NCBI RefSeq assembly: GCF_000150275.1 | Contig: NW_002060967.1 | Coordinates: forward strand, 590,556 to 654,555 | DNA from: Trichoplax adhaerens | Lineage: Eukaryota > Animalia > Placozoa | Length of the DNA: 64,000 nucleotides | Direction: 5' to 3' | In this document: positions 21,100 to 49,619 of the stretch, piece by piece | Numbering within the stretch: the stretch's first letter is position 1 | Layout: every line of letters begins with the position of its first letter | Position numbers and translations under genes: made by a program | The notes under the pieces: model-generated | Told to the model about the DNA's origin: nothing | What the model saw: only the letters and a program-made list of their open reading frames with translations | The model's database searches: none

Positions 21100-21977
21100 A
21101 TGATGTATAGATTATTCTCATTGCTGTTAATATGCTGTATGATGCCTATCTCTATACAAATGGTAAGACTATTAATAGATTGAAATCACTTCCGTTCATT
21201 TATTTACTGTTCATCGCATGCTGTAAATTAATATCGGACGTACGAGTATACATCTTTATGATTCCAATTAAATAATGTTGCAATTATTGTATTTAGACAA
21301 TTAAGCCTAAATCTTGTCTACAAGCTAAAGAATTAAAAGGCGCTAGCAATAATGGTTTCTATGTGATATACGATAGTCTCAATAGACCATTTACTACATT
21401 TTGTGATTTTAATTCTGATGTTGGATTTGTTTGGACACTTATTGAATCGTTATCGTTAGCTAATGCTAAGAAGTCCAAATATCGTAAAAGTTTCTATTAC
21501 GATGTTTCAACAAGCGGTTGTTCTATTAACTGGTCAGAATTTCGATTATGTAAATCAGTTATGAAATCGATTGCAGATGCACGAGGATCGACACATTTTC
21601 GGGCAACATGTAATTTCAATATAGAAGATATTAAAGGAATTAATAATCATCGAGACTATCTACGAGTATCATTTTGTAATTATCCGAATTTCTTTAAAAA
21701 TGTTGCTGCTCATTTTTGTACAAAAATGGACTATGTTAATATTCGAGGTCATACATGTCGACAGTGTAGTATACCGTTATATGATGGTGGAAGCAGCTAC
21801 CACATTTTACTTCAAGTCGATCACGCGAAAAATATCTGTGATAAATGGGTAGTTCCAAATACAGTCGTACACGATTTCGCTTTCGGGGATTACAGGTATA
21901 TGAATTCTAAATTTACATGCGCAAATTCATCTACTTCTACTACAAATTGGTGGATAGGCGGTGCGTATATCTCGTAA
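21100..21977 (+). CDS. Secreted cysteine-rich protein with fibrinogen/intelectin-like N-terminus (copy B, 247 aa)
   Basis: Exon 1 (21100-21162) reads MMYRLFSLLLICCMMPISIQM followed by GTAAG. Exon 2 (21297-21977) reads TIKPKSCLQAK...NGFYVIYD..NRPFTTFCDFNSDVGFVWTLIES...STHFRATCNF...DYVNIRGHTCRQC...NWWIGG. Intron position and phase match copy A. Confidence 0.88.
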
Positions 21978-25262: not shown

Positions 25263-27830
25263 AGTATTCTAAGAGGTGTGTAAAAGCTTGTAGATAAAAT
25301 CTATTTAAACGATTGGATAAATTAATAAAAGTTAGTTCTTAGTTCCTAAGGTTAGAAGTATAACGTAAATCGAAGGCGCACGAATTATTGCGAGATCGTA
25401 GATTCGATCACAACGTTATCTTGTCATATGGGAGTTTGTGACAATACCCTATCTAGAGTTTATATTTCGTTTGGATAGGATCGAACCTATCTACATATAG
25501 CAATTTCAGTTATTTTACAGTAGCAATATGTTTTGAAAGTGTAATTCTAATATAAAGAAAATACTGTCATATAAATACAGTCGTTTAAGCTTCCTTATAG
25601 TACAGTTATTCAAATCAAATTGTAGAAAACTCCTTTTATTAGAAGTATTTACTGGAAGATTCTAGGAAAGAAAATCCGTGACACCTTAACTGCGTCTATT
25701 AAAGTGGCTTTAGAAATTGTAACCATAATGAGATAGCTAAAAACGCGGATGATTATAAGGATATGCATATAATGTACCGTAATGCTAGGAAGTACTTCTA
25801 AAGCTTGTACAAATAAATTCATGCATATAGCCAGCTGTGCCGATCTTGCATATCAATTTAAATTAAGAGAATAAACACCAGTACCACTGTTTGAAGCACC
25901 TTAATGATAAATAGGCAAAGATACCAATTCATTCAAAATATTTTGTATCTATAATTAGAGTTGTAGCTATAACCATTATAATCGTACTCTTTGCCTGTCG
26001 AAATAAAGTTGAGCTCCATCAAGATTAATATATCAGATCAAGGTATTGCTGTTGATAATGGTGTTTATAAACTAGATGACAACATCAATTTCATTATAGG
26101 CAATAAGCAACAAATGCATTTCAGATAACAACGATTTACTTTTTATGTGGGAGCAATGTTAAATTAACTTTATTTAAGTGCCAACGATATCAGTATATGG
26201 ATTGCTTGATTATTACTAACTAGCTCAAAATGAAACGACATCTGATGCATTCAGATTTTAGATATAAGGTGGGAAAGCTAAGTATTACAGGAAATAATAC
26301 AAATACATAATTATTCGCGACGGTTAAAATCTTTTCTATCTTTAGAAACTCCCTTGACAACAATACCGATTGCCTTAAAGGATCAAAGACCGGAAATACC
26401 GGCTACGACATTATTTTTAAATCTTGATACTATTTCTTCCAGCGTTAGTAGTACAGTCCAATGTACGCATTGAGTACTCCGTTCAAGTCGTTACTTACTG
26501 TTGTCGATTTCCAATCGCTATGTTTTACTAGGCATAACCGAGAAGGTTGCTAGGAAATAACTTTCCGTTAAAGCATAAATTAAAATACTTTCAGGTAGCA
26601 ATACTTACAGATAACATAAGGATTGATATAGTTAATAAAGGCCACATACTTAACAACGTGGGTAAATTGTCTTATTAATATGATAACAAATGACGCTCTT
26701 ATTGACGTTTCTTAACATATATTAGGATAGAATTTAGCATTTGTTATCGGTATTTGTGTAAGATAAAATTATTGCTGGGTACAGTCGGTCAGATTTGATA
26801 ATTCATATATACTCGTAAACTTATGGTCTTCAAAGTAATGATAACGGTTCCAGTACGTTAGCTGAAGAGATTAATCTTAAACCATGTTTAAAGAATAATA
26901 CTGATATCAGTATTGCGGCACTTATTACATTATTTCCGATTGATGCTTAAGGGTGTTCATTTTGAAGTCTTGAAGCTAAATTAAATAGTATACATTTAAT
27001 GTTACTGAAAATATGAAACATATCTTTAATTGCTGATGCATGTGCATGTTCAACCATTAATAAAATTATTCACAAATAGATTACGCATAAGTGCAATTTA
27101 CTTTCTCAACTGAGATAATGTTAGCTATCAAAAATATTGGTAATAAAATAGTCTACAAATACGTCAAAGTTTAAATTTAGTACTAAATGATATTGTCAAA
27201 GTTTGTATTTTCAAACACGGCATTTTGTAAAATCAATAGGTATTTCATGTGCTGTTACAAAACAGCTTTGCAATAAGATAACGTAATGCACGATCAATCA
27301 GTCCATTCCCTGAACCACGCATCAGGGAGCAGTATCTACTCTTTCAGGAACTCTTTCCCTATACTAGTAGACTACTAAAAGACTTAGACTCCTCGTATCT
27401 TACGTTAAACACTAATCATAAGAACTCACTTCATTATATAATTTATCGTATTTATATACTCTTTTACAATAGCAAAGACATCCTGGTTAGTATTATTAAC
27501 ATTGAAACCTGATAATGAATCAAAAGCTAATTTTATCTACTGCTCCATAATGTAGACAACAGTATTTACGAACATAGACATCGAATGACTAATACAAAAT
27601 TGTCAGATTACAATATGTCCTATCTCGGAACATTTCTACGATAATCTACGATCTACTATTAGTAAATTACAATCACAGTGATTTGAATGGTAAGAAGATT
27701 ATTCTCACTTCCCTAATTAAGCTACTAGTTTCAGTAGGCCGTATATATATATCACCATAAAAGCTAGTGCTATATTTAAATATCACATATCTAAATTAGA
27801 AACTCATCATATAAGGGTAAATCAACAAAA

Positions 27831-30800
27831 TTATCCTAACATAGATGTCTCTACTATAATCTCGATATTACAGTGTATAACACTGTAACATGCGCCTAAC
27901 CACATTTTAACATTTAAGAATACACCATGTTTATATATTGATTTCACCACATAAAAAATTTCATTATTAGGAGAAAGATCAGACAGAATTTGCTGAAATT
28001 TGCAGATGATTGCACTAAACTTCTTAAATATTGATTCAATTTTGTAACAACTTACCCAACCTATAATTTCCAACCAGGAGTCGTTATGACCAGTTGATTT
28101 ATGACTTCTATCGCGTGTACTGTGTTTGCTTACAACGTTACTCTCTATTTTTGACTGGCAATATGTGATGATCTCATCACATAGTAGTAGAATACAATTC
28201 AAATCCTCCATCGATGCAGCTGCGAAACTGGGAAATTGCATATTGTCACCAAATATTTTGGCGGATGTAAAGTCGCCTAGTAGGCACTTAATCAGACCCT
28301 GTTGATTGAAACATTAGAAATAGGGCTTAAATCGAAAGTATAGTTAATTACGCTAAGTTAAATAATCTCAGAATTTTAAATAATTAAACGCGCTTTAAGC
28401 TAAAATTTACTCTAATTGTGCTAAGTTAGAATCCAATACAAAAGCGTAGCATTCAACGTACATTACGAAATTAAATACCATCAAAAGAAAAAAATATCAT
28501 CTTCATAATCTTATTGCAGGCTATCAGTCATGCGTATTATTTACTAGTATTACCGCTTAACTTGAATAAATACTAAATATGTCCGAAATTAAAACAAGAG
28601 CTACTAAGAGCACAAATTATTAACTCTTAGTAGCGTAAAACTCAACACCAAATAACAAATTATAAATACGTGAGTAATGTGAAAGTTCAACAGATGTTGA
28701 TTCCCCAAATCATGATTACAATTTAAGGATGTGCGTTGATGCGTACCGATACTTATCACATCTGTACGCAGTAAAAACAACCTACAACATGAACTTTAAA
28801 TAAATTAGACTATTCAAGCAGTTCTAATAGTATTCATGTTACATTTTATATATTAATTAATGCATAGTCTTTTACTAACGTACCGTACCTCATCAATGAT
28901 AACAATAAATATTGTGCGAGAGTTGATATTGCCGTGGATAATTAAATTAGCTCGCAACGATTTTACAGCTTTTAAAAGATCATTAAAAATTTGTTTAATA
29001 GATTCTGGAGTCAAGTATTCAGATTTGTTACACAGTAATTCGCGTAGAGTGGCTATTTCTTCACCAGGCAGCGAGTAACATACCATTCTGAAAAAATGTT
29101 TCATGTGCATGCAAGTAAATTTTGACACGCATTATTTTCTCTAGATATTTATAATTGGTATTATACAAGCTTATTTTTTTAAACGTGCTATTTACAGCTA
29201 TCTATAAGTAAAGTTTATTACCTATGGCACTATTCCGGTTTGACTATAAAATAATTATTGTATAAATAGATTATGTGATAACTACTTACCGTTTACTTTG
29301 TAATTTTGCTGGAATCTTGAATCTATGGCTTTCTATTTTAAACTTAGGACGCTCTAATGCCCAAAGGCATTGTAGTATGTTCTCTACTCGCATTTCTTGT
29401 AGTTTAATATGACAATAAAACTGCTTCTCCTTCTTCCAATCTCCAGCCTCTTTCTCACTGTAATACTTGAGCCATGCAGTTGTGCTTTCTTTATTGCTCT
29501 GATAGATGAGTTTAACTTTGAAATAGTTCTGTGTGGTAACAGAAGTTGAAGAATTTACCCCTTGGCTTGGTATTTTTTTATGCTACGTCAACAATTCTAT
29601 GAATTTTGTCCCTTAGTGAAGTTATCTGATGCAACTTTATACCATAAGAGCAATATTGAATTTAATAACTTCTATGCAATTAACATGTAATATTTCCGCA
29701 CTATTAACTTACAGATGAAACAAAATCTGCTGCAGCAGTCCGAGCAATAGATATTTTTTCAAGGCATTTCGTCTTCTGATCTAATAAGAAAGACAACATG
29801 ATATAAAAGATAACTTTAACATTCCATACTCACAAATCATATGAATAAGAATACCATTGTGCAATGTTTCGCATTCTATATTCATGTTGTCAAGGTGCAT
29901 CGTAAAACTCGACTAAATCCAATTACTTCTTGTGATAGCGAGCGATACTTAATTTATCTTTCAAAAAGACTCAATAATCGTCTTCTTCACGATATTTCAG
30001 TTCTTGTAAGTATAAAACTACTGGTGCAATAGAAACTGCATTTTGCATGATAATTATGAGTGATCATAAATTCTGCCTTCGTACTATTGTTTACAGTTTT
30101 GTGTATTAGCTATTGGAATAGTAAGCTATCGTGAAAATGAAAGTAAGTTAATGATTTAGATATCTATTGTATAAATGGAAGTGTACCTTCGAAACATGTC
30201 ACAGTTAATATTGAGCGTTTCAGATAATCTTACTCCAACTTACTTCCAATTTGATAGTAAGACCGATCTTGAAGTAAATCTTTACTACTGGCCCATTTTA
30301 CCTTATCACAGCAGTTTCCAAGAGATCTTACAATTCTAATAGAACGATCTAAAAATGTTTGAGTGAACATCGTGTAAATTATTGGATTAATACACGAATT
30401 AAGCGGTAAAGATAAGACAGCAATAAATGGCAATACATGAGTGTCCAACTCAGAGTTGATTAAGCCGATAATCAGAATAGCATAAAACGGAAGCCAGCAT
30501 ATAAGATCAGTAGCTACAATAGTAATCATCTTTGCTACAATTATTTTATCTAATCTGGAAATTTGAACATTTGCCTCGCGACGAGATTTTGCTAATGTAA
30601 TAATAATGCCAGAATACATAATGCTGATGATAGCCCAAGCCAAGAATGTTACACCGCAATAACATAAAAGCCATAATAATAGATAAGGATTGCTAATATT
30701 ACCGGGCAAACAAGCCCCATTAACGCTATGCAAACGATTATTAGGTGTCTGATTAAAACCATAAATTATTGGTAAACCTGTAAATACGGCAGAAATTGCC

Positions 30801-33800
30801 CAAACAATAAGGAAGATATTGAATATCTGTCTGTAGGAAAGACGATAATTTTGAAACGGATAGACTAAATATAAGTAACGATCCAGTGTTATAAGAAAAA
30901 TGACCAATGTCGACACGAAAGTAGAAATTGAGACTAGAAAAGAACATATTGAGCAAACTGTACTCCGTAACCAAACTTCGTGGTATTCAGCATAGACTCC
31001 AGAAAAGTAGATGTTGGCTGATGCGATAGTTGTCAAGTAAATACCCATCAGCAAATCTGCTGTTGACAGATTAATAATTAAAGATCTGACAATAATATAG
31101 TCCTTGTTTTTCCCATTTGTATGCCATATAATTGAAACGATATTGCCAATGATGGACAGGACTCCAATTAGCCAAATGAAAACTCGTAGTACTCCATGTG
31201 ATAAAATATCTGAGCAAGTTGATAAACTGAACTGATCTGGTAAAGGCTGGCAAATAGTTACAGATCTTCCAACGTAACAACATAGATAATCGAGAGTTGA
31301 AAGTCTAGTATCAACAAAGAACTTACAGTCAATGCAATCATTTTTTAAGTTACATTCATGTTGGTAAAATATTTAACATTTATTAGCATTTCAGTTTCTG
31401 CATAATTGTTCTAAATAGTATTAAATATTAAGCAATATTATTTAGACTTGTAGATTGTATTACTGAAGATACTTGGTATATAAGTGCTATGGTTTTACTT
31501 TCAATTTATTAATCTGGTAAAGGAAATCTTCCTAGTACTATACGATCAATTAGAATTACCCTTCTGATGCTTGTTTGTTCAACATATTGATATTTTATTT
31601 CATTTAGGTATTGTAGCCCAATTTAACACCATTTAACTATTTCATCACTCAATTAATTCTTATTTATAAATAATTTCTTGTATAGGAAGATAGTTCTTAA
31701 TAATTTGATGAATAAATTAGTAAATACTTTCAATTACTACAATTCATATCAGAACTAAAAACTTTATTTATCATCACAGTAATTACCTATATTCCCAATT
31801 TGTTGCACAAAGGTTTTACAATAAATTTTTGATAGAATCTGTTATAATCTCTCAAGTTTGTAATGAAATACGTCCCTTTAATACACTATCAACAAATCAT
31901 TGTCAAACGGTGCTATCTCGTTAATTGTAACAGAATGATGCTAAATACCATTCAAGATTTAAAAATTAAATATGCCAAATGTGGCAGCTACCCTAGAGCA
32001 GATAAAGCAAAATTTCCAAACTTTTGTGGTATTAAAATCTCAGCAAACCGTAAACTATCTAAACTTAGAAATAAATTACCGTTACATGCAATTACGGTAG
32101 CCGGTGATGTTGCTAAAATTGATGGTATATATATAGCCCTGATCGGTAAAATATTTAATTTTCTCTACGCTATTTGTTAACTCACTATCACTGCATTCTA
32201 ATTTTATATTTTGGCCTAAATATAAAATGAAGTCATTTTAGTGTTTGCTAAAACTGGAATTATTCTGAACTTACTACTATGGGTACTCTTTATTACATTG
32301 AAACAACACTGCCTGGTATACCAACGCCAAAAATACTAATTAAAGTTATATCTAATAGTCTTATGCAAGGGTTGCCTGAGTAAGATACATGTATCTAGCG
32401 ATATTATTTTCCTCTGCTTTGAAAATGAATATTGAAGAAGTTGAGTATAAAAAATGTATTATTAAAAAATTAGTTTAAAAGAACTTTTCAACGTATAAAA
32501 TTTATAGGTCGTGTGCAATCTGGTGGGCTTTTATTCTAGATAAATCTAACGTCTTAAATAGATTTACATGAAGGCTTTCAAATAGATTTGTAGACTACGC
32601 CGCTAGAAATCAATTTACGAGTATAATACTCTACTTACAAATCTGTCATACCAGTGCTTCCAAGTAGAGAGTGGGTTGTAAATTCTATCAAGGGATTATT
32701 TCTTAAACTTCTATAAATATGAAAATAATAATAAAATTTTAATGAAGATTTAATTTTAGTCTTATCCTTCACTGTTTACTTACAAATGGCGAATAAATGG
32801 AAAGCTATTTAGACAGAAAGGAGTTAATTTCGAAATCTGGTTGTTATTGATACTCCTTCAATTTTAGATGTGATAGAAATTGAAATAAGTATAAAAGTTG
32901 TTTCAGAACATTTGCTAATTCAATAAATAAAAATAGTATATTTATAAATACAACTAGATACTAAAGAAAAAAAGATTGGCCTTAATTTATCGTGCATTAT
33001 ACATGAAATGAGCTGGATAAAATAACATGCAAGCTTATTTAACTGCTACATTATTGGAAAAATAAATTCAAACATACAGCTTCAATAATTTCGAAGCAGC
33101 TGCAGTAAATTTCGCAGGTACGCACATATCAGTTATGTAATTGTTATCGACATTTCTGTAACAGAACCAATATTAATATTAGATTGAGATCCATACCAAA
33201 TATATTTGGCTTTTAATAATCGCTATCTGCCACTAACGATTGAAAATATTGATGTTATGGCAATGCTGTTTCTAACTTACAAAAATTTCAGACTTCCTCG
33301 ACTTAAAAGTGATAAATAGTCACTAGTTTCGAGTTGATTGTCGCTTAGCAATCTAATCAAACCAATATAAAAGTAAAATTCTTACATTATCATGAAAATT
33401 TCTATAGTTAATGTAGACTCCTATTTTAGCAATTACGATAAGGGCGACATAATTGGTAAATATCCCTCGTTAATAAATTGAAGCTTCCAATATCTTCATT
33501 CATTAAAAGTGATTAATAATTTTTAAGAGCAAATTTCTATCTCTGTATTTTTGCCGTACAAATCCTCAATATTTGTTGAAGGTGGAAGCGTTTTAAGACC
33601 AATCGTCTTTAGTTGGCAGCTTATCATTATACTATATATAGAAATTGAAATCGTTACATTCCTTATCTTGAACTACGAGATTAACAAATGTGTTAAGAAA
33701 AAGATTCAATCCGTAAATATCTCCTTAACTTATTTAAGAAACTTACAGTTGTTGTATTTCATGTATCCTTGAAAATAGACCCTCAGGTAATTGACCGAAC

Positions 33801-36800
33801 CTGTAGCCACTCAAATGTCTACAATTTGTTCATGAAAATTACTAAAATCATTTTATTTGAAGCCATAAATACCAACTATTATTATAGCAATTATTTCGAA
33901 AATTAATTGATTATTAAGTGATAAAAGTACAATTTGTTGTAATACGTCCTTGCAGATAGTATTGCAAACAAACTTGTAACAGAGATGTTGGTGTAGCTCA
34001 GTCCCCTAAAATAATATAATTATGTACTAGTTATACCAAAAATTAGAATGCATTCAAAAGCATTTGGTAAAGCTACATCAGCTAGAATAGTTTAAGTGAT
34101 TATCATAGAAATTATGATCCTCTGAATAAGAGACTAGTTTACAGTAGCACTCATATTAATAACACGAAACCATTTAGCTAGCAGTTATAAAGAGTACTAG
34201 AATATTATTTGAAGGCCTTTATTTTTTCCTTCATAAAATGTAGCAATCGTTGATTAAAAATGCAGATACCACACTGATCAGTTTAGGGTATTTATCTCGT
34301 GTAAATCGCGGTAAATATTAATAAAAGGAGCTTAAAAATCGTAACATAGTAAACTAAGGTATACTTACAGGCTTTTTAGATTTATCAAACTGGTAATCAG
34401 AGTCTTGTTAAGATCGGTTAAATTGTTTTCGTCTAAAAATCTTCGATATAAAATCCATGTACAAATGATAATTCCGTTACAAGCAAGCTTTAGTTAAAAT
34501 GTGCTATAATCCATTTGCTTTTAAATAATGCCTTAAATTATTCTCGGGAAAATATATAAAGGATTTACGAGCGAACGAAAGAATATTTTCAGTATTTATT
34601 CTTATTACCAGCAACTGTTCCACATTAGCTGAGATAGGTTTAATTTTGTCCGTATCCTAACTTAAATGGCTTAACTAGGAAACTCGACTATTTTGATCGT
34701 AAAAGCAAAATAGTGCTTATGCATGTTGGACACTTACGAGCGGTCCTCGTAAATTTGAACTGTAATGAACGTAAGAATATATGAACATAACGAGATTTTC
34801 TTATTGTAATTCTAAATGGTTTGGTTATCGTGATTATAGTTGGTACCAATATGCGTATGCTTACAGCGATATTATAGCCAACAGTGGTAGGATAGAACGA
34901 TAATGGCGAATAACCTTCGTGTACTCATAACTGCATCCTACGCTCATTGATACACGTATCTGTATGGTAGGACCGCACTTCAACGCTATATTGGAATATG
35001 AGTATATAAGTACAGTATTGAGTAACTACTCGAGATTTCTTAGGATTAATTGCCTCGAGGAAAGCGCATTGTTAGTTTCGATTTACAAATCTAAAGAAGA
35101 AATAAGAATCTTCCTAAATTTAACTACGGTCGAGTGTCAGTAGATAGTGTTAACGAGCATGGAGCCGTTGCTGAATATGACATTATTATATACTGTATTA
35201 GAGTAGAAATATCTATGTTAGGATAATTTTATTAGCCTATCCTTATTTAGTTAACTTTTAATTTGGATATACTGTGATTTAGAATAACACTGGCTTTTTA
35301 TGACAGTGACATATATACAAATACTGAAATTATTAGTTATATTAGGGAATACGAATTATCTACTTACAGTTGGAATCATTGTGATTGTAGCTTACTTATG
35401 GTAGATTGCAAATTATCGTGGAAATGTCCCGTGATAGAACATATCGTAATCTGACTATTCTGTATTAGTCATCAGGTGTCTATGTTCGTAAATACTGTTG
35501 TCTGCATTAGGGAACAGTAGCTAAAATTAATATCTAATTCAGTGAATAATTCCAAAGTTAATCGTACTAACTATGACTTATGAACTATTGAGGAAGAGTA
35601 TAACATATATAAACGCAATATGTCGTGTAATAAAGTTAATTCTTAAACTTAGTGCTTAACGTAAAATACGAGGCGTCTAAGCCTTTGTGTAGTCTGCTAG
35701 TAGAGCAAAAGCGTTCCCGATAGTGCGGATACCGTTCGTTATATCGAATTATAAAACTGAAAGTGGGCATAGTCCATTCGATATTTTAGTACTGCATTCT
35801 AAATTATCTTTATTGTGTAATAAAATGTCCAGCATCGTCCCTGTCAACCCACATTAACTCTAGCCTTCACAATCCATATCGCTAATCTAATGGTGTTAAA
35901 ATCAGTCAAGTGATTGAACTCAACAGTAACAAATTTTTAGTCTAAATTATCTGATATAGTTCTGGATTATAATGCAGAATTTGGATATTTAGAAATTTAG
36001 TCAGCTAGCATTTGTCTCAGAGTTTGCCTTTGAGAGAAAATTTATATAAGAAATCAAATTAATTATATTTCGTATTGAGTTAAAGTTGCACTGATGAGAA
36101 ATAATAAATATAGTAACTCTATCACAATTTGCTATCGAAATAGAGCATTACTGGAAATTTGTGATAATAATACAGTTTTGTTCGCTATACATCCGCTAAA
36201 TGATTCGTGAACATTTTCTTACTCACAGATTCTGAATATCCGATATCCTTTCAAAAAATTCATTATTGAACGTTGATGAATTTAAATTGCAAAATTTCAT
36301 TCCCCTAATCAAAAGTTAGCTGGGATATTAAACTTATTCATAAATGGTAAAGTGTACATTTTTTTAATTATACGGTATCTCGTTATAAAATAGTTTATAC
36401 TGATAAGGTAAAAAACTCTGGATTTCTATAAGAAAATAGTATATTTATACAAAGTATTAAGAGATCCAAGATGATTAAGGAAACGAAAATCTATTTTTCG
36501 CAAATTGACCATATAATTCATATTTCTAAGAAAAGTGGTAAAAAAGAATTGCAAAACATCAAAATAAGAGTCTTTTCTAGATTTTTACTTAATTCAGATG
36601 TACAGATCTCACAGTATCTCAAGAAATGGAAGCTCTTTGAAAGCTTTTTCCTCCAGCCCGATTAGGTGACGATTACCAATACTCCTGCACCCAATCAATT
36701 TAATTATCCATAAGAATAATACGAAAGCAAATTCATTACTAAATAAGCTTTCATATTCTATCATTCGATAAAATAGTTGTAATTTAATTAGATGTATCAA

Positions 36801-39800
36801 ACACCAACGTCTGCTTTTCTATGATGAAATTATTAACAGATAATATTATAACTGCTNNNNNNNNNNNNNNNNNNNNNNNNNNNNNNNNNNNNNNNNNNNN
36901 NNNNNNGAATTTCGGCTATGAATTGTTTAGTTAAATGGCTAGCAAAATAACAGCATATAGCAATTACGGTTAATTCTTGCTTGTAACACATGTGAGAAAA
37001 AAGAATTTACTAGCTTATATAAAACTAAGCAGTTCATTATTTTACTACATAGTTCAACTGAAAGACAGGGGAAAAGAATCATAATAGAGCAGTGCAGCTT
37101 AAATAAATTATCTACAATACAGAGTTGAATACAAAGTTATCATGTAATAATCGTGTTACGTAATTAGATTACAATCATAAAATATACAAATCATAGCTAG
37201 ACGAAAACAAGCAGAAAAGAATTGAAACATATAGTTTATGTCATAACATTAAGTATGCAGTATCATAGATAACAATTACAGCAATACATAATTTAGTAAG
37301 CACAGTAGCAATGCAGCGGCATCCTGCAATTTTGCAGGTATCCCAAATCGCAGTAATACCATGATACTATAAATCCTTACCCAAAAATTCATCTTATCAA
37401 CCAAATAACACTATAATCATTATATTTTTAAAGAAATAATAGATTAAAATAATCAAAATTTATCACGTAACGTACAGTTCCATTAAGAAAGGAATCCTAT
37501 CAAACAAGGCTTTAGGTAAGATATTCAAATAATTGTGGGATAAGCTCCTTTAGATTAAAAAATAGCATAAAGCTGTCTGGAAGTTGCAAGAGTTTATAAC
37601 TGACATAATTTGCATTTAATTAAATATTCATTCTATAAAAAAATTTCAAAAGTCATAATTACAAATAAGTTATGGATGAGTAATTGCCAAAAGCTTCCTC
37701 ATGGATCTTTCTTAAGTTTAAATACTGCATATTCCTAATTAAGGTAAAATTTGTTTATTTCTTAAAATCAAACATAGCCCCAAAGTTCTAGAATTTTGCC
37801 CTTTTATTATTTAGAATATTGCGATAGAGAATATTTTTATTTGAGTCTAATAATTTATTACTAAAGTGTTTGCGAAGAAAGTAGCGAAACCTCCCATACA
37901 ACTTTAGCAGAGTTAATCCTTTACTTTACTTACATTCAATAAATCTTCCTTATTAAAACTGCTTTCTAGCAAAGTATTCTAAATACCAAGAAAACTTACG
38001 CCCTCAATGGAGCAAATGCCGAAAATGTGTTGGGCCCTATATATTCTATAAAGTTGTTTCGTAAGAATCTAGGAGAAAAGTAGCATTGAAAATTAATCAA
38101 GACAACTGCTCTGTCTTTTACCGCCAGTAATATCTGCCTTAGCTAAAGAAGAACTGATGAAATCAGAACTTTAGTAGCATTTGCCATCATCTATTACGTG
38201 CTATACATTCGATTAGCGGAAGGAACTGAATTGGAATTTATGTAAATCATAGCTTATCGCTCAGGAAGGCCTTATAATTCATAAATTCTAAAATTTCTGT
38301 TGCGCACTTATTATTTCTATAATAAATACTAATTGAGGTGTTTCAATTTTGGAAGACACTTGATTTTGAAACACGTAAATTTAAAACTAATATCCACATC
38401 ATAATTTGAATAATTTCAGAAGTTTTATGATCAAACCCATGGCAGATTAAAAAAATTTCGCCACAGGTACTTCGGAAGCAATACTTACAAATAATTTAAT
38501 GCTACCGTATCATGGAATGTATGAGGTCCGACATAGGAAATTCGATTATTATATAACCTCCTAAATATTGATTAAAGTCAATCTTAAGAATTTTCGATTA
38601 CATTTTACGCTAATGCTACTGTACCTTCTACAGTACTGTAAGCTATAGTAATTATAACGGACTATTTTTACTAGCTCATTCCATTCTGCAAATAAATAAT
38701 GTACTACTTCAACGAAAGTATAGTTATGATAATCATGAAAAATGATAGAATCTTCTCTGCAATTTTCAACGAACAAGACGCGAAGTGATAAACATTCAGA
38801 AAATTGTCGGCGTTTCAGTTTTTCGATTCTATTATTTTCTAAAAAGCTGTAATTTTGACAAAAAGACAAACAATAAATTTATAATGAGCTTTCAGTAATC
38901 AACTGGAGTTAATCAAAACATATTTCTCATGCTATCGGATCCTATAAGCTATGCGTTGTATTATTTAAATTACACACAGTTCCTCAATGACCGTTCCGTT
39001 GCATAAGTGATTCGGTAAACTTGTTAGTCGATTGTTTTGTAATGATCTTAAAAAGAAAACGAAGCTTGATTGCTATTAGCCGTTTTACAGATTTTCTATC
39101 CTTAAGTTGATGAGCGTTTGCATAAATGATAACGGTAAATTGTTGTCAGAAATTGCTAAATTTATATCTGTTTAACCATCATCATTGTTTTTAGATGGAA
39201 TTTTTATAGACACCATAGCCCAGTGTAACATTCGAGCTTGCAACACAGAAATTACTGGATTTTTCCCTCTCTGAAGTTGCCTTAACTATCTAAGCTTCTA
39301 ATTTTAGATACTCTTTAATCTACCAAAACCTAGATTCCAGTCTTAGTCAACAGCACACGCATGGCCAAGAATCAAAAGTTTATTCTAAAAGCTATTAAAT
39401 TAAATGTCCGACTGAACTTACAAAATACAATTTACAACCAACTGCTATCGATCAACTTATTGACTCACTTATCAACTCTGAGGCTTTATATAGCCTCAGA
39501 AATTCCCCCGATGCAAAGGAATAATAAATTAATAGCCAAATCTACATAATTAGCATGATAACTGCCGGGTCAAGGACATTTATTCATTGAATATTAATTC
39601 AGAAGCGCAAACTATTGTTGAGCAAATGCAGTATAAATTATACTTGATGGCTAAATAATAAGTATTATTTAAATAATAACGGGAAGTATTATTTGTTTGT
39701 TGGCATATGTTTTACCCTAACATCTAAGTCAGTTTGCTGTGCCATTTTCGTGTAACTATCTATATTGATTTACGCAATTGATCTTCCATTAAGAAATACT

Positions 39801-41426
39801 AAATCCCCAAAAAGTGATGATTTGCAATTTAAATAAAATTCTAATTCTCAATTTAATTCTGAAGATATTAATGATAATGAATCCTCTTCAAAATGAAATA
39901 ATTATTTATCATCTTTGAATTGTACCCAGACAAAATGGTAGGAGGAATATTCTGACCATAAATTTACGGCTAGATTATGACCAAGAACAGCGCTTTACAA
40001 CAAGAATGTGTCCTTTTTAATCTTGATTTTAATTTTCTGATGTTAGGTGTGTGAAGTGAATAAATAACTGCAGTTGTACCTTTTGCCTTACTTATCTATC
40101 TAACTACTGTATTATCCGCAAACTATCATTTAAAAATCCATTACAGTCAATATACGCTCATTTTATAGATTTATTGGAATTTTTAGCTAACGAGATAAAT
40201 TATTTTGAGCCTCATCGTGCGCAGTCAATATAATGCATTCTTCTAGAGGAACGAGGCCTTTGATATAGCAAGAGATTTTCAGAATTCAGGAATTCCAGGT
40301 AAAAAATAACGTTTTAATTCATAAGCGGTAAGACACTCGAAATAGTTTGGCATAAGCTAGTTTCGGAGTCTCACCATCGTTATCACTATACAATATTCTT
40401 AATGTATCTTAGCCTTGATATCGTAGGCAATAGTCGTTGATGGAAAATTTACGTCTATCTACGGAGTCCACAATGTGAAATTTTGACTAATTTAATTTAA
40501 ATATAAATACAAGCTATAATAAGATAATAGTCCTAAATTCTAACTGAAATATTGCTACACTACTTTTAATCGGTAATATTGTGAGTTATCTCGATCGTAT
40601 AAAAAAATTGTCACATATGCAAAAATGTCGACAGTAGCCTTACCGGAAAACTCCCAAAACGCAATATATATCTTAAAAGAGATTTAGTTACTATTCTCAC
40701 AGTTCTTTCAACTTCGGTAAATTTTTAAACATTCCATCAGCAATCCAGCTAATAAGATTATCTGAAAGCAGCCTAAATCGTAAATAATTAAGAAATTAGT
40801 ATATGAGTATACCGAATCGGAAGTATATCAAAAATTTTAATAAAATAAATTGTCTTTCCCTTAATTCCTGTACTAAATCTTAGATTTACAAAATCAATGC
40901 CTGTAGCAACACACGGTATATTAATAAGCCATTAACTTCTTACAGACATATCCAACAGCAATTAGTACAATTTTACTTGAAGTCTACATAGTACGAAGCA
41001 GTAATTTTTTGTAACAATAGCGAATCTCTTTTTCTAACACTTTGACTTTCAGAAATTTTGTCACTACTTCCAATCCATATTTAATATGAGATAGTATCAA
41101 AAAAATAAATAAACAAATTTAATCGCCGTTTGGCAACGATGCTATGATTTTATGTCTTTTCTCATTGCAAAGTAGTTAGTTCTCCATATTATAAGTAGAT
41201 ATCTGGTCAACCACCCTATATCATACTTATATATTGCATCTCAGTAGTAAAGAATGTATATTTAAAAGTGTTACACCAGATTTCTAATCGTATTAATTTT
41301 TGAGTGGGGTATGTATTATATTTGCTAAGTTTAATTACAGTATTCAGCTCTCACAAATATCTCAACCCAATTGCCTCCATTGGACGCGAATTCTTTAGTG
41401 AATGAATCAGATTAAATGTTAGGTCT
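27831..41426 (-). CDS. LRR-containing class A GPCR (LGR, RXFP/GRL101-like hinge) fused to a C-terminal pseudokinase; paralog 1, 5' end unresolved
   Basis: Seventeen phase-2 LRR exons of 69-78 nt: 41426-41355, 40772-40701, 39046-38978, 38846-38775, 38560-38489, 38068-38000, 37734-37663, 37547-37476, 36684-36613, 36304-36227, 34440-34369, 33818-33747, 33631-33560, 33352-33281, 33155-33078, 32855-32784 and 32710-32639 (e.g. SLSHNYLNILPKALFDRIPFLMEL). Then hinge+7TM exon 31304-30244, linker exon 29780-29713, and kinase-like exons 29528 (or 29582)-29290, 29087-28889 and 28298-28056. The terminal exon is uncertain (about 27992-27831). Confidence 0.85.
28056..29528 (-). CDS. Pseudokinase-domain exons of paralog 1
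   Basis: AWLKYYSEKEAGDWKKEKQFY...RVENILQCLW (subdomains II-IV), TLRELL, IIHGNINSRTIFI (VIb), KCLLGDFTSA (VII), EDLNCILLLCDEII (IX-like). Splice phases are compatible throughout. Confidence 0.82.
30244..31304 (-). CDS. Hinge + 7TM exon of paralog 1
   Basis: One open exon: YLCCYV...CQPLPDQFSLSTCSDILSHGVLRVFIW, NLSTADLLMGIYL (TM2), ITLDRY (TM3), TDLICWLP (TM6), LPLNSCINPIIY (TM7). It ends at a phase-1 GTAAGT donor. Confidence 0.95.
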
Positions 41427-44400
41427 CTAAAACATGAAATGAAATTATAGGATTAATTCGGATTATATAAAGTATGTTCAAACGGTGNAAGTAACCCAAA
41501 TGAAATTGTTAATCTTAGAGTTATCCACATCAGCAAATNNNNNNNNNNNNNNNNNNNNNNNNNNNNNNNNNNNNNNNNNNNNNNNNNNCTCTTACCCTTT
41601 AGATACACATTAATTTAACAAGCAGAAACCATGCTTATTATACTTCGGGTACTGCATACAATTTGTATAAACATTTATTTTTTATTTTCACATTAATTCA
41701 TCGCTGCTGTCAAAGATTTTATTCCAGTTTAAGTCATTAGTGTACGATATCCGCGCATTGTTCCGTAATCTACTCGTATTCCGTAAAGATGCATTGATGT
41801 AGTTACTTTGGAAATCAAAATATACGAGTATATGCTGAGATTTTAAAAGCTAGGGATTGCCCTAACTTGCAAACGAGGAACGAGAGAGTGATTTCTACCT
41901 GATACTCCTGTTATTTGGAATACCAGACAATTGGTATTCCAAGGCAGATAGACGATTTTTTATATAGTTGTTAAAAAGACTTTAAGGTTCAGTTCGTAAC
42001 AGTTATTTGCGATACTAGTAAAGTTCCCGTTCAAATGATCAGGTATATATTCTACTAAAAGCAAGACATGAAAGGAAATTCACAGTCAGATTATATCTCA
42101 AGACTGTATATATGTTTCCTCTATTAAACCTCTTGATAAGGTATCGTCCATACCATGTATAATATACCCAGCGTACTAATTTCAGTCGTGGACTGCTACA
42201 AAAATACTTTTTTAGCAGTCTATATCGCAATATAGAAGATATGCGGTAAATCACATACAGTGTATAACTATGTATCATTTCACTTTAATCACCTGTACTG
42301 TACTACTGTACATAGCTTATTTAATTTACTTAGGAATATGTTACATACTTGCAAAACGGCATATTGTATTTCCTCTGTTTCCTCTATTTTGCAGCAAATT
42401 TACTCAGCATACATCTACTCGTATGCAACTAAACACTGTTCAGTGCATTGTAACATGACAGGATTATAATCATGCATATACAATTTTACGATTTCATATA
42501 CAATTCATCTATTTTCGTACAATCTAACAAACTTAGTCCTAGATATATTTGGGAATGTACTGCAGTAGCATAAATATGATAGTTAATTAAACTATGACCA
42601 TAGTAGTAGAGTAATTCAACGGTGAAGTCAATTGCACGTGGACGAGGATTGACACATTTTTGTTCAACATGTAATTTGTAGGCGTCGAGACTATCTTCGA
42701 CACGAATGTATACCATATTTATTTGATGAATAAGATTTTTAGAAGCATCGCAATGTCTAGCATTCTCTGATAATATTACTGAAATACGTAGTTGTAAAAA
42801 TTATTAGATCATTACGATACATACCATTGTTATAATAGCTTTAACTGCTTTAAAACACGACATGCAGGTTGCTGTTATGGATCAGAATCTTGAATCCGCT
42901 TACAAAAATGCATGCATAATGCTAAAATTTTGATCGAGCAAAACGTAATTGCCTAATTATTCCTAAGTAATCACACCTATTTGTCAAATCTGTTTTTGAT
43001 GATTAGTAAATTTAAAGCTTGCAAGCTTTTCAAGTTACTTTGTAACCTTAAGCAAAGCTTCTAGGATTAAAGCGAATTGGTTTTGTGGTGATTAATCATC
43101 AGAAAGTCTAACACAGCTACGGAGGTTCATGGAGAATATATACATTGCGTAAAAACATAAGTGGTAATTTTCTGCCCACCGCAATTCTCTATGAATGCTA
43201 GAACTAACATGTTGCAAAGATGAAATACGAGAATAAAGTATGAGAATATAATTGCTACTAGAAGGAAATACGAATTTATTACAGCTTTTTTTATCAGAAA
43301 CTTGTTCAACTTGAAATAGACCATGTTGATAAAATGTCTTATAATTATGGATATAGTATACGAACTTCAAGCTAACGGAGTCACTATTGATTCATTTGCC
43401 TAGCATTTGTAATATTGAGCGTTTAGGAAGAGTTGTCGGAAAAGATCATTTAAAAGCTGTTGAGGTTTAACGTAGTACTGGCAAGAATACACTAGGCATA
43501 TGTAAAATTATTACTGCGGTTGATTGCATGCACTGTATCTGTTTATCACATACTAAGCTCTCAATAAAATACTAAAATAGACAAGTATCTTTACTGCTTG
43601 CCCAGTATTTTTCTAATTTCAGTATAAACAATGATTAAATTCAAATGAGAACACAACACCATAATATTGTCTCCGACCTCAATAAATTGAAAATAGTAAA
43701 CATGGATCAACATATTTTATTTGAAGAAAGGGCTAAGGCAATTTAAAATGACATCAGGTATTTGCACAATTTCAATAATCAGCAATACAATGTTATCTAT
43801 TTATAATAGCTTAAAATACTGCTTGATAATATTTTCCGCTAATGACAGAATTAAATTAATAAGTTATTGTTAGCAGAAATAAATCTACCTTTCAGATTAT
43901 TCTTAAAGTTAAAAGAGTCAAAAATCAAGGTAAGTATGTAGCTAATGAGATCCCTTTCATATTCTGATTTTTTCTGGTTGATTGAGTCCGACAATTCTCC
44001 TTATCGGTGCAATACAACTTTGAAAATGTAGCCATGCTTTAAGATGTTATCATAGAACATAGAATACAACTTTGATAGGATATTGGACTAAGAGGAAATG
44101 GCAAGCAGTTTCTATTTTGGATTTATTTACTTATTAGTAACAAGATAATTGCGTTATATATTTAACACATGTTGGAACTAGCCGCTAAAGAGGACTTAAT
44201 GATTAAACCAATTGGATACTACATTAGATAATAGCTCAATATTGAATTAGTTACTTCTCAGTCGATGATTATGAATGTTAGTTTCGTATTCCTGCAGCTT
44301 AATTCAAGTAGTAAGTCATATAATTAGAATAAAAAGTTAGGCAACGCTCTAAGTTAAGATACTAGATGCTTAAATAGTTAGACAAAAATCTCTTATTACA

Positions 44401-45229: not shown

Positions 45230-46781
45230 CCAATCTTGAGCTGTCTTCCAATCACTACTACTGTAGGATATTGCGACATTATTGATATGTAAACTATTAT
45301 CAGTGGTTGTCATATCCTCTAGTATTTTGAACTTGCAATACGCAAGTAGTGCATCACACAACTGCTTCATGTTGCTATAATCATTCATCTGTAAATCAGC
45401 AAAATTTGGATATGGCATAGCATCATCGAATATTTGTGTAGATGAAAAGTCACCTAAAAGAGCAGTAATTTTCTTTCCCTGTTCATAAATATATATATGG
45501 AGACCGTAAACATTTTTAATACAAACTGAAATTTTGAAAAAGTAGCTATAGCATACGTATATACATCTGTGCTTGAAAATATTTGGTATAATGTTTGATA
45601 TCTACTTGACTATCTGGAACTTGCTACATTATCCTTATTGTCAGTACTATAATAGCATAACTCATCAAAGTAAATGCAATTACGCGCCAAGTGTGAATTA
45701 AACAATAGCTTGGACGAATTTACACGTAAGGAATACATAAGTATTCTAACTGCGTATCATGCCTTGTTGATTTATCTAAACTATAAATAGAGATAACTAA
45801 GTTTTATGCCTTACTTACATAATAATTTAGAGGAATGCAGTTTCAAGATATAATCTTAATACGTATTATTATTAAAACATGAATCTCTAAATTTACTTAA
45901 ACCGTGTTGTATAATGTCATAATGCTTTCATCAAAATATGTTTTAGGTCTAGGATCAATTAAACTTCATTAGGTGCATTACTTGATAAAAAAGATCTTGT
46001 ACGTTTAATTTCTTCTAGTTTACAATAATTACCATTTAGATTCTTGAGAAAACTGAAGGCAACGCATTTAACAACAATACATTCTTAATTTCTGATTGTT
46101 GATCCTAATTGAACTATTCTATTGTTATCGGGTTGCATATGTTAAAATTTTTATCATTCGCATGGTTACTTAAAACTACTGATTTGAATACCTGGCTCAG
46201 TAGTGCTATGAATATAGCGTCCATATGGATATTACCGTAGATAATTGAATGAAATTTCAATGAATTGAAAGCAACCTCGATATCCTTAACGATTTGGATA
46301 ACACTTTCTGGCGTTAAAAAATCGGATTGACTGGAGATTAAGTCACTTAATATTCCTATATCTTCGCCAGGTAATGCATAACATATCAATCTACAAAGTA
46401 ATGGATAATTGTTCTGTCATCAGGCTAATAATATATAAACCGACGATTTTTTTATTATTGTCATTGTATGAATATTGTAACATAAATCGTTCGATTTATG
46501 ATGAATTGTTAGTACTTTAAGATTGCAGCATAAGTTTCCATATCTTACAATCTATTGTGTATTTCTGCTCCAAATCTTTCACCATCTTGTACTTTATATT
46601 TATTACCACCTTCAAACCAAATGCATTCCACAATATTACTTATATGCCAATTTCGTAGTGCGATATCATAATAAAACTGTTTTTCCTTTTCCCATAAATT
46701 TCTATCTTTTCTATCGTAGCATTTAAGCCATCCAAGTTTACAATTCTTATGGCTTAGGTCAATCAGTCTTAATTTGAAGTT
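45230..46781 (-). CDS. Pseudokinase-domain exons of paralog 2
   Basis: GWLKCYDRKDRNLWEKEKQFY...HISNIVECIW, IIYGNIHMDAIFI and ALLGDFSS. Intron positions and phases match paralog 1. Confidence 0.8.
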
Positions 46782-49619
46782 CTAAAATCAGCAATAAACT
46801 AGAAAATTATTATAAGCATGTGGTAACTTGTTAATAGTAATACAAGTAAGTAATACTGAGTAGCCTACTATATCAATAGGTAGAATATAAAGAGATCAAA
46901 TTTAAATTTAACAATTTTGATCTATTTTTGATAATATCTTATTCAAATGAAAATTATGTTAAAGTTGTCATGATTATCTTGTAACGTAAGAAATAATCCG
47001 ATTAAACAGCAGGTTTGATCAGTATATGATAAAGTATGTATCATTTAAGTTGGAAGTAGAATAGGTAATTTCTGCCTTATTCATACTGGTACACTTTTTA
47101 ATGAATGTGAGAACTGAAAGCCTTACAACCTACAGTAGTAGAAAAGTAATAATTTCTGCTTTTAAAAGGCTTAAAACAATATTGACGCGTATGACACTTA
47201 AACTGGAATTTAAATGCTGCTCTAATTCTTCAGGATCTTCAATAAATTGTTGTGGCTTGTTTTAATATCGAATGGATATGTATTTGCAACTATACTGCCA
47301 TAGGAATTTGAAGCTGAAGATTCGATATTTAAAATCGAAATTTCACTTTGCGTTAAGCTTAATATCGCAGTAACAATATTAATTGTTAGTAATTTGTACT
47401 ACGATTCTTAATATGGTCACAATTTTGCTAATTTTTGGCTAATAAATTTAATGCTTTGTAGTGAATATACAACATGGATGGCAAGCTCATTTTTAAAATT
47501 TCCGAGAAGAAAAATTTTGTATGTGCCATAAATTCCAAAGAAATTAGGCGATGCCGGGTATAAATTAAAGTTATTTGGATAAATTTATATGTTAGGGATT
47601 GTAATTTGAGTAGACTTCAGATATTTTTGTAGTGTCCTGAGTTTAGTACTTGAGTTAAATATTTAATTTAGTATTGAATCATCAATATGCACTACCGTAG
47701 TCTGTAATAATTATGTAGTTTATTACGACTAGTTGCTCGTGCTCCTACAAATACAGTAATTCAATGCCCGTGCTTTACGAATGGAAGCATAATAGGTCAT
47801 GCGCTAGAATTTATAAGCGTATGCACCGAGTAGATCGGAAGTTCTTTTGCTAGTAGTTTGTTGTGAATACAGTTACGGTTAGTTTTATTGTAATAAAGCT
47901 TAATTTGGGTTTTAACTCCAGTTAGTTTGATTTATTGTGAACGCTTAAGAATTGACTTCACTAAATACTTCCATTTGATCATGTAATGAGACATAAATTT
48001 TTCAAATTCTTCTTTGTAAATTAAACTCGTTTTATAGAAATAATATTTATCTGAGCGATAATTATGAAGCATAGACAGATGTACAGTTAGGTACTATTAC
48101 TTAGGCAATAAAATTTCTACATTAAGATGACTTCATCACAAATGTATATGCCTGTCACGGTACGAACTACCGTGAAGAAATAGATATCTAAATTTGGTTA
48201 ATATAATATAGTGATATTATATTACAACTAGTTACTTACAATAGGAATTACTCTAATTATAAATGTGTTACAGTAAATTTACTGCTGTGCTGTAATGTGT
48301 ACTGAAATGATTCTGCGAATGGACATATTGTAGTCCGACTGTGAAAAACTAGTTAGTAGATGTTCTCACCCAAGTATTTTTATAGGATGACTTGTGAATG
48401 TTAGCTGCTGTAGAAGGGTATATAAACCCGTCAGATAGTTGAATAAAGCAGTTCTCAATTGTATAGTTGTTTTAACGTAGAATCAAAGGCATCTAAATTC
48501 TTGTGAGGTAGTTAATGGATACTGAATCCCGGAGACTACGGTAATTTAGAGATTTGTTTTACGTTATCCTTGTCACGAAGCTGGTTTGTGACAATGCCAC
48601 TTATATTCGCTTAAAAAGTGTGTACTAATGCTTTATTAGTGAAATTTTTGAAGATTAAAATTTTGATGCATTTCAAATTAGAGTGTTGATAACACACGTG
48701 ATGTAATTTTAATTTTAATAATTTCCAACTTACATATTTAATTTCAGTAGTAGATGAAGTTGAGATTATAGAGATTTTCTCATTTCTTAGGGATTCAGGA
48801 AAGAAGTCTAGTGAAATTTCGCATTAAAATAGAAATATTAACTTTTTATATTTTTATCATTATCCATAAGCATATTGCTCCATAAGCAACGAAAGCTTAA
48901 GACGATGGCGGTAGGCTTAAAGTAAAGTATTGAATACGAGTTCTTGGTAGATGCCTATTATAATTATTAATTTGATCTTATATCAATTATCCTCACGAAT
49001 AAACCAGTTATCGTTTTTCATTCTGGCATAACCCTTTGACAATCCCATAATAATTAGCATAAAGTTTGATGTCTCTACACTTCTAGCCTTCATCGTATAG
49101 CGCATTGCAATTAGCTTAATGACAATATAGAGCATCATTGGTTAAACATTTGGTCTAGTAAAATTTTACATCTTAAGAGAGCATATTCGAATGTTATTAT
49201 CGCTCACTTAGTCTAATTCCAATGTAACTCAAGAAATGGAGGAGTAAATTTATTGAATAATTTGAAAGAAACAGGTTCTATAGTGAGACCTTAATTATCA
49301 TCAAGTAAGATGGCGGTGCTAGATCTGAGTAGACTAGTAGTGTCAAAGATAGTTTTTTAGGCATTAGGATAGTCGAGTAAGTTGGCGAATAATTTAAGAG
49401 CGACAACTATAGCCTTGAATAAGAATGTAAGTTATTTCTTAGGAAGGAATTCAGTCGGAGACCCAGCAGCGTATAGATTCATTTGTCTAAGTTTGCAAAT
49501 GTAGCATTCAACGATTAAATTAAGCAATAGCCCATTTTAGCTACTAATATTAAAAAGCAATTTATTGTGGAACCATTCCATAGTAAGGGAAGGAATTATT
49601 CTTTTTACATTATTTGAAA

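Follow-up and report, generated by a model that had tools for sequence, protein, structure and literature searches.

A leucine-rich repeat G protein-coupled receptor gene of Trichoplax adhaerens with a predicted pseudokinase tail

Gene layout, splicing, and receptor class

The 64,000-nucleotide stretch of the Trichoplax adhaerens genome analysed here (contig NW_002060967.1, positions 590,556 to 654,555; referred to below as the window, in the numbering of which all positions are given) carries on its minus strand a gene for a leucine-rich repeat (LRR) G protein-coupled receptor (GPCR) with a cytoplasmic tail that is predicted to have a protein-kinase fold. The exons that could be read within 27700-31400, all on the minus strand, comprise an exon of hinge cysteines and seven transmembrane (7TM) helices (30244-31304), a linker exon of 22 full codons and a split codon (29713-29780), and three exons of the kinase-like part. 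Alignments of paralogs (A1 to A3 for K1 to K3), together with profiles of K1 and K2 and a structural model, assign to K1 (29290-29528) the N-lobe with its beta strands, the beta3 Lys (codon 29468-29466), alphaC and beta4, to K2 (28889-29087) beta5, the hinge, alphaD, alphaE and the catalytic loop with an HGN triplet (28936-28928), and to K3 (28056-28298) the DFG-equivalent GDF (28277-28269) and a long helix (model residues 193-229). The last exon (26149-26975, minus strand) holds 16 codons (26975-26928), the stop codon (26927-26925), and about 780 nt of 3' untranslated region.

The 7TM exon, the linker, K1-K3, and the last exon are spliced into one mRNA. When contigs of public runs were aligned to 26100-32000, those of runs X5 and X6, which come from different studies, were found to omit exactly 30243-29781, 29712-29529, 29289-29088 and 28888-28299, and to contain the junctions 30244/29780, 29713/29528, 29290/29087 and 28889/28298, the first three of which had been predicted by the first-pass annotation, made from the letters alone. 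The junction 28056/26975 is present in three runs (X5, X6, and X7). All segments omitted in the X5 and X6 contigs, five introns altogether, have GT..AG ends on the minus strand, and the acceptor and donor sites (29780/29713, 29528/29290, 29087/28889, and 28298) are compatible with phases 1, 0, 2, and 0. A single 1652-nt contig of X5 consists of 76 nt from the 7TM exon followed by the 68-nt linker, K1, K2, K3, and 827 nt of the last exon (26975-26149), contigs of X5 and X6 join 26149/26255-26975 to 28056, and both the acceptor at 31304 and the donor at 30244 of the 7TM exon occur in transcript contigs. Run X7 has, in addition, a contig inside the K2-K3 intron (28704-28863); coverage by X7 alone is no proof of an exon, because this run holds some unspliced RNA or DNA.

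The GTAAGT donor of the 7TM exon starts at 30243, and an in-frame TAA stop of the 7TM frame (30232-30230) lies 11 nt past this donor. Contig depth in the intron bin directly after the donor, which overlaps the stop, is 0-0.4, no contig over 26100-32000 shows read-through to the stop, and no ATG-led start was found for the K part. The first-pass annotation had placed the donor before the stop, with matching phases and no separate start for the kinase part, and is borne out on each of these points. It erred in ending the gene at 27831: a GTAAGT donor in use at 28055 terminates K3, the exon that starts at 26975 contributes 16 more codons and the stop, the last letter of which is 26925, and 27831-28055, the tail of a single-exon open reading frame, is intron. 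The last 25 or so codons of that tail have more than 30 genomic matches of 65-91% identity and belong to a dispersed repeat in the last intron (27253-27890), which is no part of the protein and at which contig depth rises up to 789, with many variants. Downstream of the gene, the opposite strand has an open frame of 226 codons with many Cys and Trp residues at 21297-21974 (plus strand).

The 7TM exon is 100% identical to XP_002117659.1 (TRIADDRAFT_61684, Trichoplax adhaerens), a public model of 471 residues that contains the 7TM exon, the linker, and K1, and then enters an intron; it is a shortened model of the LRR-GPCR-kinase gene. The Trichoplax sp. H2 protein RDD36152.1 (P0166, 641 aa, annotated as 'GRL101-like protein, partial') is identical to the spliced product, including its C-terminus. 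The spliced gene was queried exon by exon, and P0166 was used as a stand-in for the joined protein.

The LRR ectodomain is encoded by a chain of exons of about 72 nt and phase 2-2 between 32639 and 41426 (minus strand), delineated by a scan of splice sites, phases, and LRR motifs and matched exon for exon in paralog 2, a tandem copy of the same layout at 45230-63805 (minus strand) that was delimited by genome searches and the same scan. Seventeen such exons are predicted, each with xLxxNxL at its start, the motif on which the scan was anchored: 41426-41355, 40772-40701, 39046-38978, 38846-38775, 38560-38489, 38068-38000, 37547-37476, 36684-36613, 36525-36451, 36304-36227, 34440-34369, 34005-33931, 33631-33560, 33352-33281, 33155-33078, 32855-32784, and 32710-32639. 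Few of them were recovered by tblastn with the LRR regions of paralogs, and stricter exon scans were unsuccessful. The LRR and 7TM parts are joined, because the X6 contig reaching the 31304 acceptor extends beyond it by sequence from 32639-32668, the end of the last LRR exon. In line with this, Pfam finds LRR_8 (E 8e-38) together with 7tm_1 in paralog proteins of strain H2. Neither a signal peptide nor the 5' end of the gene was found; upstream of the first predicted exon lie runs of N at 41488 and 41539-41588.

An assembly gap (36857-36906) falls between the LRR exons 37547-37476 and 36684-36613. Both flanking exons are of 72 nt and phase 2-2 and have as counterparts two exons of paralog 2 that follow one another (60414-60343 and 59513-59442); the intron that holds the gap is of similar length to that of paralog 2 (791 nt vs. 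829 nt). Therefore, the gap appears to be intronic and the coding sequence uninterrupted, and nothing points to a lost exon.

Short tails are typical of the LRR-containing GPCR (LGR) class, textbook GPCRs that include the receptors for FSH, LH, TSH, relaxin, and R-spondin. The 7TM exon matches Pfam 7tm_1 over the cutoff (E 3.6e-28) and has, as the first-pass annotation had noted for the first and the last of them, intact DRY (LDRYLY), CWLP, and NPIIY motifs. Its closest named relatives are GRL101-like proteins of coral, abalone, and Aplysia (28-36% identity), and 'GRL101-like' is the only label that orthologs from strain H2 bear in GenBank. No LDLa module (Ldl_recept_a) was detected by Pfam in P0168, the placozoan models being partial at the N-terminus. 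As judged by sequence, the receptor is a type-C-like (GRL101/relaxin-receptor-like) LRR GPCR with a rhodopsin-class 7TM domain.

Fold and motifs of the predicted kinase-like tail

The tail comprises 266 residues (376-641 of RDD36152.1), with a short linker directly after helix 8. Pfam searches with single exons gave a weak match of K2 (Pkinase, E 0.075) and of no other K exon, and the contiguous tail of P0166 matches Pkinase with E 4.7e-4, colinearly over residues 28-194, from the N-lobe to the DFG region. In one paralog the score for PK_Tyr_Ser-Thr is 23.3 bits, as compared to the cutoff of 23.1. In searches of PDB with profiles built from paralog exons, K1 gave four matches, the top three of which, the sole kinases among them, are TGFBR2, at beta2-beta4 (E 0.33), and K2 matched several hundred kinases at alphaE and the catalytic loop (best E 1.3e-5). 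The TALE repeat proteins that top the list of K2-profile matches were rejected as spurious, being sums of weak matches to 'LTPE..V.I'. With the profile of the whole-domain family alignment A7, 512 sequences in PDB were matched at E<=1 (best E 1.1e-5); the 60 listed are protein kinases without exception. Alignments A4 and A5, in which exon fragments had been mixed with full domains, were misaligned and were discarded; A7 is usable. A search for homologous proteins restricted to the tail region returned solely the cluster of the query itself.

The AlphaFold2 model obtained from A7 has a mean predicted local distance difference test (pLDDT) score of 83.9 and a predicted template modelling (pTM) score of 0.83. 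It contains N-lobe strands (25-46), an alphaC helix (48-66), alphaD, alphaE, and the catalytic-loop strands, after which its shortened C-lobe continues with two long helices (193-229 and 239-265); the linker (model residues 1-20) is poorly modelled, with pLDDT of 43-53. Foldseek found at least 500 matches to this model at E<=0.001, and 50 of the 50 listed are kinases, among which EphA3 is the best (E 2.4e-8) and TGFBR2 the third. After VIA re-ranking, ACVR1 is the best match (Z 17.3, rmsd 3.7, 211 residues aligned), and each of the top 50 entries is a receptor of the TGF-beta family. A structure search independent of Foldseek also placed TGFBR1 (Z 16.6) and ACVR2 (Z 16.3) on top, followed at Z 15-16 by plant receptor-like kinases, IRAK1/4, RIPK3, and the pseudokinases NFR5 and IRAK3.

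These results indicate that the tail is predicted to adopt a bilobal protein-kinase fold, and that it probably represents a complete but degenerate kinase domain of about 245 residues, of the tyrosine kinase-like (TKL) group. The model is nearest in shape to the TGF-beta/activin receptor kinases, within tie range of other TKL kinases: the former rank first in three measures, with a lead of less than one Z unit, and their sequence match has E 0.33. An origin of the tail from the TGF-beta receptor kinase family may thus be taken as a lead, and not as a result.

The catalytic motifs were compared in alignments A1, A2, and A3 of 14 paralogs. The motifs AWLK, W..EK.FY, HGNINSRTIFI, and LGDFT, which had been read from the letters by the first-pass annotation, are present, and support its description of the domain as a pseudokinase. 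No glycine-rich loop (GxGxxG) is seen in alignment A1. The HRD triplet is HGN in the LRR-GPCR gene, and HGN, HGS, HGC, HGG, HGF, HGD, HRH, or YGN across the paralogs; the catalytic Asn is replaced by Thr in the LRR-GPCR gene and mostly by Asp or Glu in the paralogs; and the DFG position reads GDF in this gene and GKF, GNF, GGF, or GVF elsewhere. The segment after the DFG position has just 88 residues, with two long helices predicted, and the predicted model has no activation segment, P+1 loop, or alphaG. What is expected of an active kinase, namely a Gly-rich loop, the HRD Asp, the catalytic Asn, and a conserved DFG Asp, is therefore not found, and the domain looks catalytically dead and unable to transfer phosphate. 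The beta3 Lys/alphaC Glu pair is retained in the LRR-GPCR gene, and the Lys in most paralogs; the alphaC Glu is invariant in the family, and so are its W and F neighbours (W..E..F). Among the core residues, Y, W, E, F, and N in K1, and C, L, L, I, A, S, and I in K2 are invariant.

Paralogs in placozoans and related tails in other animals

When the genome (1414 contigs, 105.6 Mb) was searched with K1, K2, K3, and the 7TM exon, at least 13 other loci were revealed that have a 7TM exon of 52-64% identity and, in the same orientation and within 1-4 kb after it, K1 and K2; most of them have K3 as well. Exon sizes and phases are kept across these loci, and the reading frames are open. Next-tier LGR-like 7TM exons (<=39% identity) are not accompanied by K exons. 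Paralog 2, for which the first-pass annotation had proposed the same architecture, indeed has its 7TM exon, K1, K2, and K3 at 51873-50846, 46781-46551, 46389-46192, and 45478-45230, respectively (minus strand), with a run of N at 49620-50128 between the 7TM exon and K1. The single change of reading frame in its 7TM exon, near 51395 after ...YRLSYRA, reflects a genuine disabling indel or else a mistake in the assembly. The models RDD45091.1, RDD36286.1, and RDD42511.1 of strain H2 contain full LRR, 7TM, and K parts, and UniProt names the fragment B3SE90 'Protein kinase domain-containing'. A 13-kb contig of the ENA metagenome assembly ERZ27263980 (k141_518824) carries a 7TM exon, K1, and K2 at 8001-10649 (L029) and ends within K2; no T. 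adhaerens locus is more than 60% identical to it, and it derives from another organism, presumably another placozoan.

The dN/dS ratio of K exons (Nei-Gojobori method, summed by exon) is 0.24-0.40 for several paralog pairs; for the pair L021 and L022, dS is 0.48, dN 0.14, and the ratio 0.30. These values place the kinase exons under purifying selection. Our results show an expressed and selected family of about 15 genes in one placozoan.

Several loci depart from the common pattern. At L027 (C1404:1078767), L025 (C1385:243088), and L026 (C1266:10739), K exons are present and no 7TM exon of the family type was detected nearby; K2 of L027 reads HGD....N and is the sole copy with both the catalytic Asp and the Asn, and L026 seems to be an allele or a duplicate of the C1400 locus. 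L024 (C1394:267000-274000) has in-frame stops in the 7TM and K exons and is likely a pseudogene. L017 (C1414:92500-101500) has a stop in the 7TM exon and another in the initial K3 match; its K exons, as delimited, are open.

Kinase-derived tails are also found on LGRs of other animals, as indicated by C-terminal extensions of the 150 best 7TM relatives. In protein P0032 (L031, GCA_041260155.1; 1367 aa), nine LDLa modules and LRRs are combined with a 7TM domain and a tail that matches Pkinase with E 5.2e-5. An hhalign comparison of this tail with A7 gives a probability of 95.9% (E 6e-9), and the aligned part extends from the N-lobe as far as the DFG position. The phase-0 intron of P0032 about 10 residues before DFG and its phase-2 intron at beta5 coincide with, or lie at most two residues from, the placozoan K2/K3 and K1/K2 introns. 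The hidden Markov model of A7 matches the post-7TM tails of eight further proteins (P0058, P0079, P0062, P0146, P0055, P0064, P0095, and P0067) with 17.5-32.6 bits, always in the same alphaD-to-DFG stretch, and three of the eight tails have a Pfam kinase match of their own. The profile of these tails (A8) matched 525 sequences in PDB at E<=0.01, and the 60 listed are, again, all protein kinases; the best match is a JAK-family kinase at its LVHGNV stretch (E 2.4e-10), which is taken to be that of the JH2 pseudokinase domain. Aligned with each other, A8 and A7 give a probability of 97.9% and E 3e-13 over 101 columns. The sources of the tails are GCA_964340395.1 (P0055, L032; P0058, L033; P0079, L034), GCA_041260155.1, GCA_964355755.1 (P0062, L036), and GCA_029531755.1 (P0146, L035), the last of which is the sea cucumber Holothuria leucospilota (PMC11574266). 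The tail-bearing LGR/GRL101-like receptors of other animals are large, with CUB, C-type lectin, LDLa, and LRR modules besides the 7TM domain.

The tails of other animals have the HG catalytic loop in common with the placozoan domain and lack the N-lobe, with the exception of P0032. On gene models and weak-to-moderate scores, they appear to be homologous to the placozoan K2-K3 region, and this suggests an old fusion that may have been trimmed since in most lineages. We tentatively consider, with somewhat less than even confidence, that the tail is a module, ancestral and so far unrecognised, shared by an entire clade of GRL101-like LGRs of animals, which would have provided a G-protein-independent kinase-fold output before the split of placozoans and bilaterians. 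Placozoans and P0032 would then have retained the N-lobe, and the sea cucumber and other animals just the alphaD-alphaF half.

Proposed function, rival explanations, and known systems

Taken together, the spliced contigs, RDD36152.1, the at least 13 other loci, and the confident fold model uphold the proposal of the first-pass annotation that LRRs, a 7TM domain, and a kinase fold are encoded by one gene. We regard it as likely that this T. adhaerens gene encodes a type-C-like LRR GPCR, the cytoplasmic tail of which is a degenerate TKL-group pseudokinase with a docking or allosteric role. A ligand would bind to the LRR ectodomain and switch the 7TM core, the coupling of which to G proteins is to be expected because its DRY, CWxP, and NPxxY motifs are intact. 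The tethered pseudokinase may serve as a docking or allosteric module with its exposure or conformation set by the state of the receptor, and may recruit an active kinase, an adaptor, or the tail of a second receptor to the activated receptor, as other pseudokinases recruit their partners. This would give the receptor a second, G-protein-independent output. Since the modelled tail resembles TGF-beta receptor kinases, TGF-beta-type receptors or their partners are candidate interactors.

Several observations weigh against this proposal. The Pfam Pkinase score of P0166 (20.1 bits) is below the gathering cutoff of 31.7, and the K3 profile matched no kinase in PDB; the Pfam annotation of these receptors is incomplete, because its thresholds miss the kinase domain. 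That the runs used for the splice analysis represent RNA is a guess, which is supported by their intron-less contigs and by coverage confined to exons. Among the LRR exons, transcript support concerns 32710-32639, and all upstream exons, i.e., the 5' part of the mRNA, are predictions. The H1 and H2 sequences are 99.6% identical, with 10 coding differences in 1861 nt vs. 27 non-coding ones in 7900, and this divergence is too shallow to show constraint. Finally, the domain may still bind a nucleotide, because its Lys-Glu pair is retained.

The retention of the beta3 Lys and the alphaC Glu, together with the Asp of GDF in the LRR-GPCR gene and the HGD....N sequence of K2 in L027, would also fit an active or atypical kinase, in which case the receptor would be a GPCR-kinase enzyme proper, comparable to the GPCR-TKL/K proteins of choanoflagellates and oomycetes, and certain kinases, such as WNK and CASK, are functional despite odd motifs. 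However, the glycine loop and the catalytic Asn are missing, most paralogs have K, N, G, or V instead of the DFG Asp, the HRD Asp is replaced by Asn in the LRR-GPCR gene and by S, C, F, G, or H in paralogs, and the model has neither an activation segment nor a P+1 loop, which makes enzymatic activity quite improbable. Hardly less improbable is that the tail is an evolutionary leftover in the course of being lost, with no role of its own. While the loss of catalytic motifs, the retention of just the C-lobe half in related LGRs of other animals, the pseudogene L024 with its stops in the 7TM and K exons, the 7TM stop of L017, and the frame change of paralog 2 could be read in this way, the dN/dS of 0.24-0.40 for K exons in several paralog pairs, the open frames and conserved splice phases at the at least 13 other loci, the invariance of core residues, and the compact, confidently predicted fold argue against it.

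The joints themselves could, in principle, be artefacts of read-through or of a chimeric transcript of a GPCR gene and a neighbouring kinase-like gene, as might be suspected from the in-frame stop 11 nt beyond the 7TM donor and from the old JGI model that ends inside the K region. We consider this very improbable: identical joints occur in two independent studies, no contig reaches the stop, the K part has no ATG-led start, the phases fit, and the arrangement recurs in another organism and at no fewer than 13 further loci of this genome. A tail acting on the receptor itself and not on partners, as an intramolecular plug or a dimerisation handle that controls access of G proteins or arrestin, trafficking, or pairing, is possible, although we think it rather unlikely. 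The short, low-confidence linker right after helix 8 and the replacement of the usual Ser/Thr-rich tail would fit such a role, and kinase and pseudokinase domains often dimerise; the idea is nevertheless compatible with a docking or allosteric pseudokinase and does not exclude it.

An LGR with a whole kinase-fold domain in a placozoan offers a concrete system in which to study how a kinase-fold scaffold can be driven by a 7TM switch. Signalling through LGRs and signalling of the TGF-beta-receptor type may also turn out to be linked from early on, and the fusion may be far older than placozoans; in echinoderms and other animals, shortened versions seem to have been preserved. Gene models and domain annotations of these proteins are incomplete.

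To our knowledge, GPCR-kinase fusions have been thought to be absent from animals except sponges. The first-pass annotation described 7TM-enzyme fusions as known mainly from oomycetes and amoebae, which is too narrow: the 7TM-kinase fusions named 'GPCR-bigrams' include oomycete and amoebozoan GPCR-TKL, choanoflagellate GPCR-TKL/K and GPCR-TK, and sponge GPCR-TK proteins (PMC6033456, PMC12716839), and a 2025 survey of GPCRs in eLife reports them in acanthoecid choanoflagellates, sponges, oomycetes, and amoebozoans (PMC12716839). The same survey included the T. adhaerens proteome and reported no placozoan fusion; it argues for repeated independent origins of GPCR-kinase fusions and states that none has been functionally characterised (PMC12716839). 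Roch and Sherwood (2014) listed placozoan LGRs, including a group of the GRL101 type, and did not mention a kinase domain (PMC4079206), and there is no mention of LGRs or kinases in a 2025 preprint on the GPCRs of placozoans. The literature searched contains no paper on an LGR-kinase fusion, nor on any GPCR-kinase fusion in placozoans. To this extent, the suggestion that the family is undescribed stands; as regards the proteins themselves it does not, as they are already in GenBank, unremarked.

With type C LGRs (GRL101 of Lymnaea and RXFP1/2) the placozoan receptor shares an LRR ectodomain, a hinge with cysteines, and a 7TM domain of the rhodopsin class. It differs from them in its 266-residue kinase-fold tail, present instead of a short one, and in that LDLa was not detected in the placozoan proteins, the N-termini of which are incomplete. 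Like the GPCR-bigrams, it is a single polypeptide in which a kinase-fold domain lies C-terminal to the 7TM domain, and may be counted among them; unlike in these proteins, its 7TM domain is that of a rhodopsin-class LGR with a large LRR ectodomain, and its kinase domain is degenerate and lacks catalytic residues. The TGF-beta/activin/BMP receptor kinases (STKR, TKL group) are the best structural matches of the tail (Z 16.3-17.3, about 205 residues aligned) and have the W..E..(I/F)Y...ENI(L) pattern of alphaC-beta4 in common with it. However, the identity is 15-20%, the catalytic residues are absent from the placozoan tail, and the STKR proteins are single-pass receptors with a Cys-rich activin-receptor ectodomain, in contrast to the LRR and 7TM parts of the placozoan protein. 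While the pseudokinases JAK JH2, VRK3, IRAK3, and NFR5 are not fused to 7TM receptors and have no specific sequence relationship to the placozoan tail, JAK JH2 and VRK3 have the same HGN catalytic loop in alignments, IRAK3 and NFR5 rank high among the structural matches, and all four exemplify a kinase fold that is kept as a regulatory or scaffold module.

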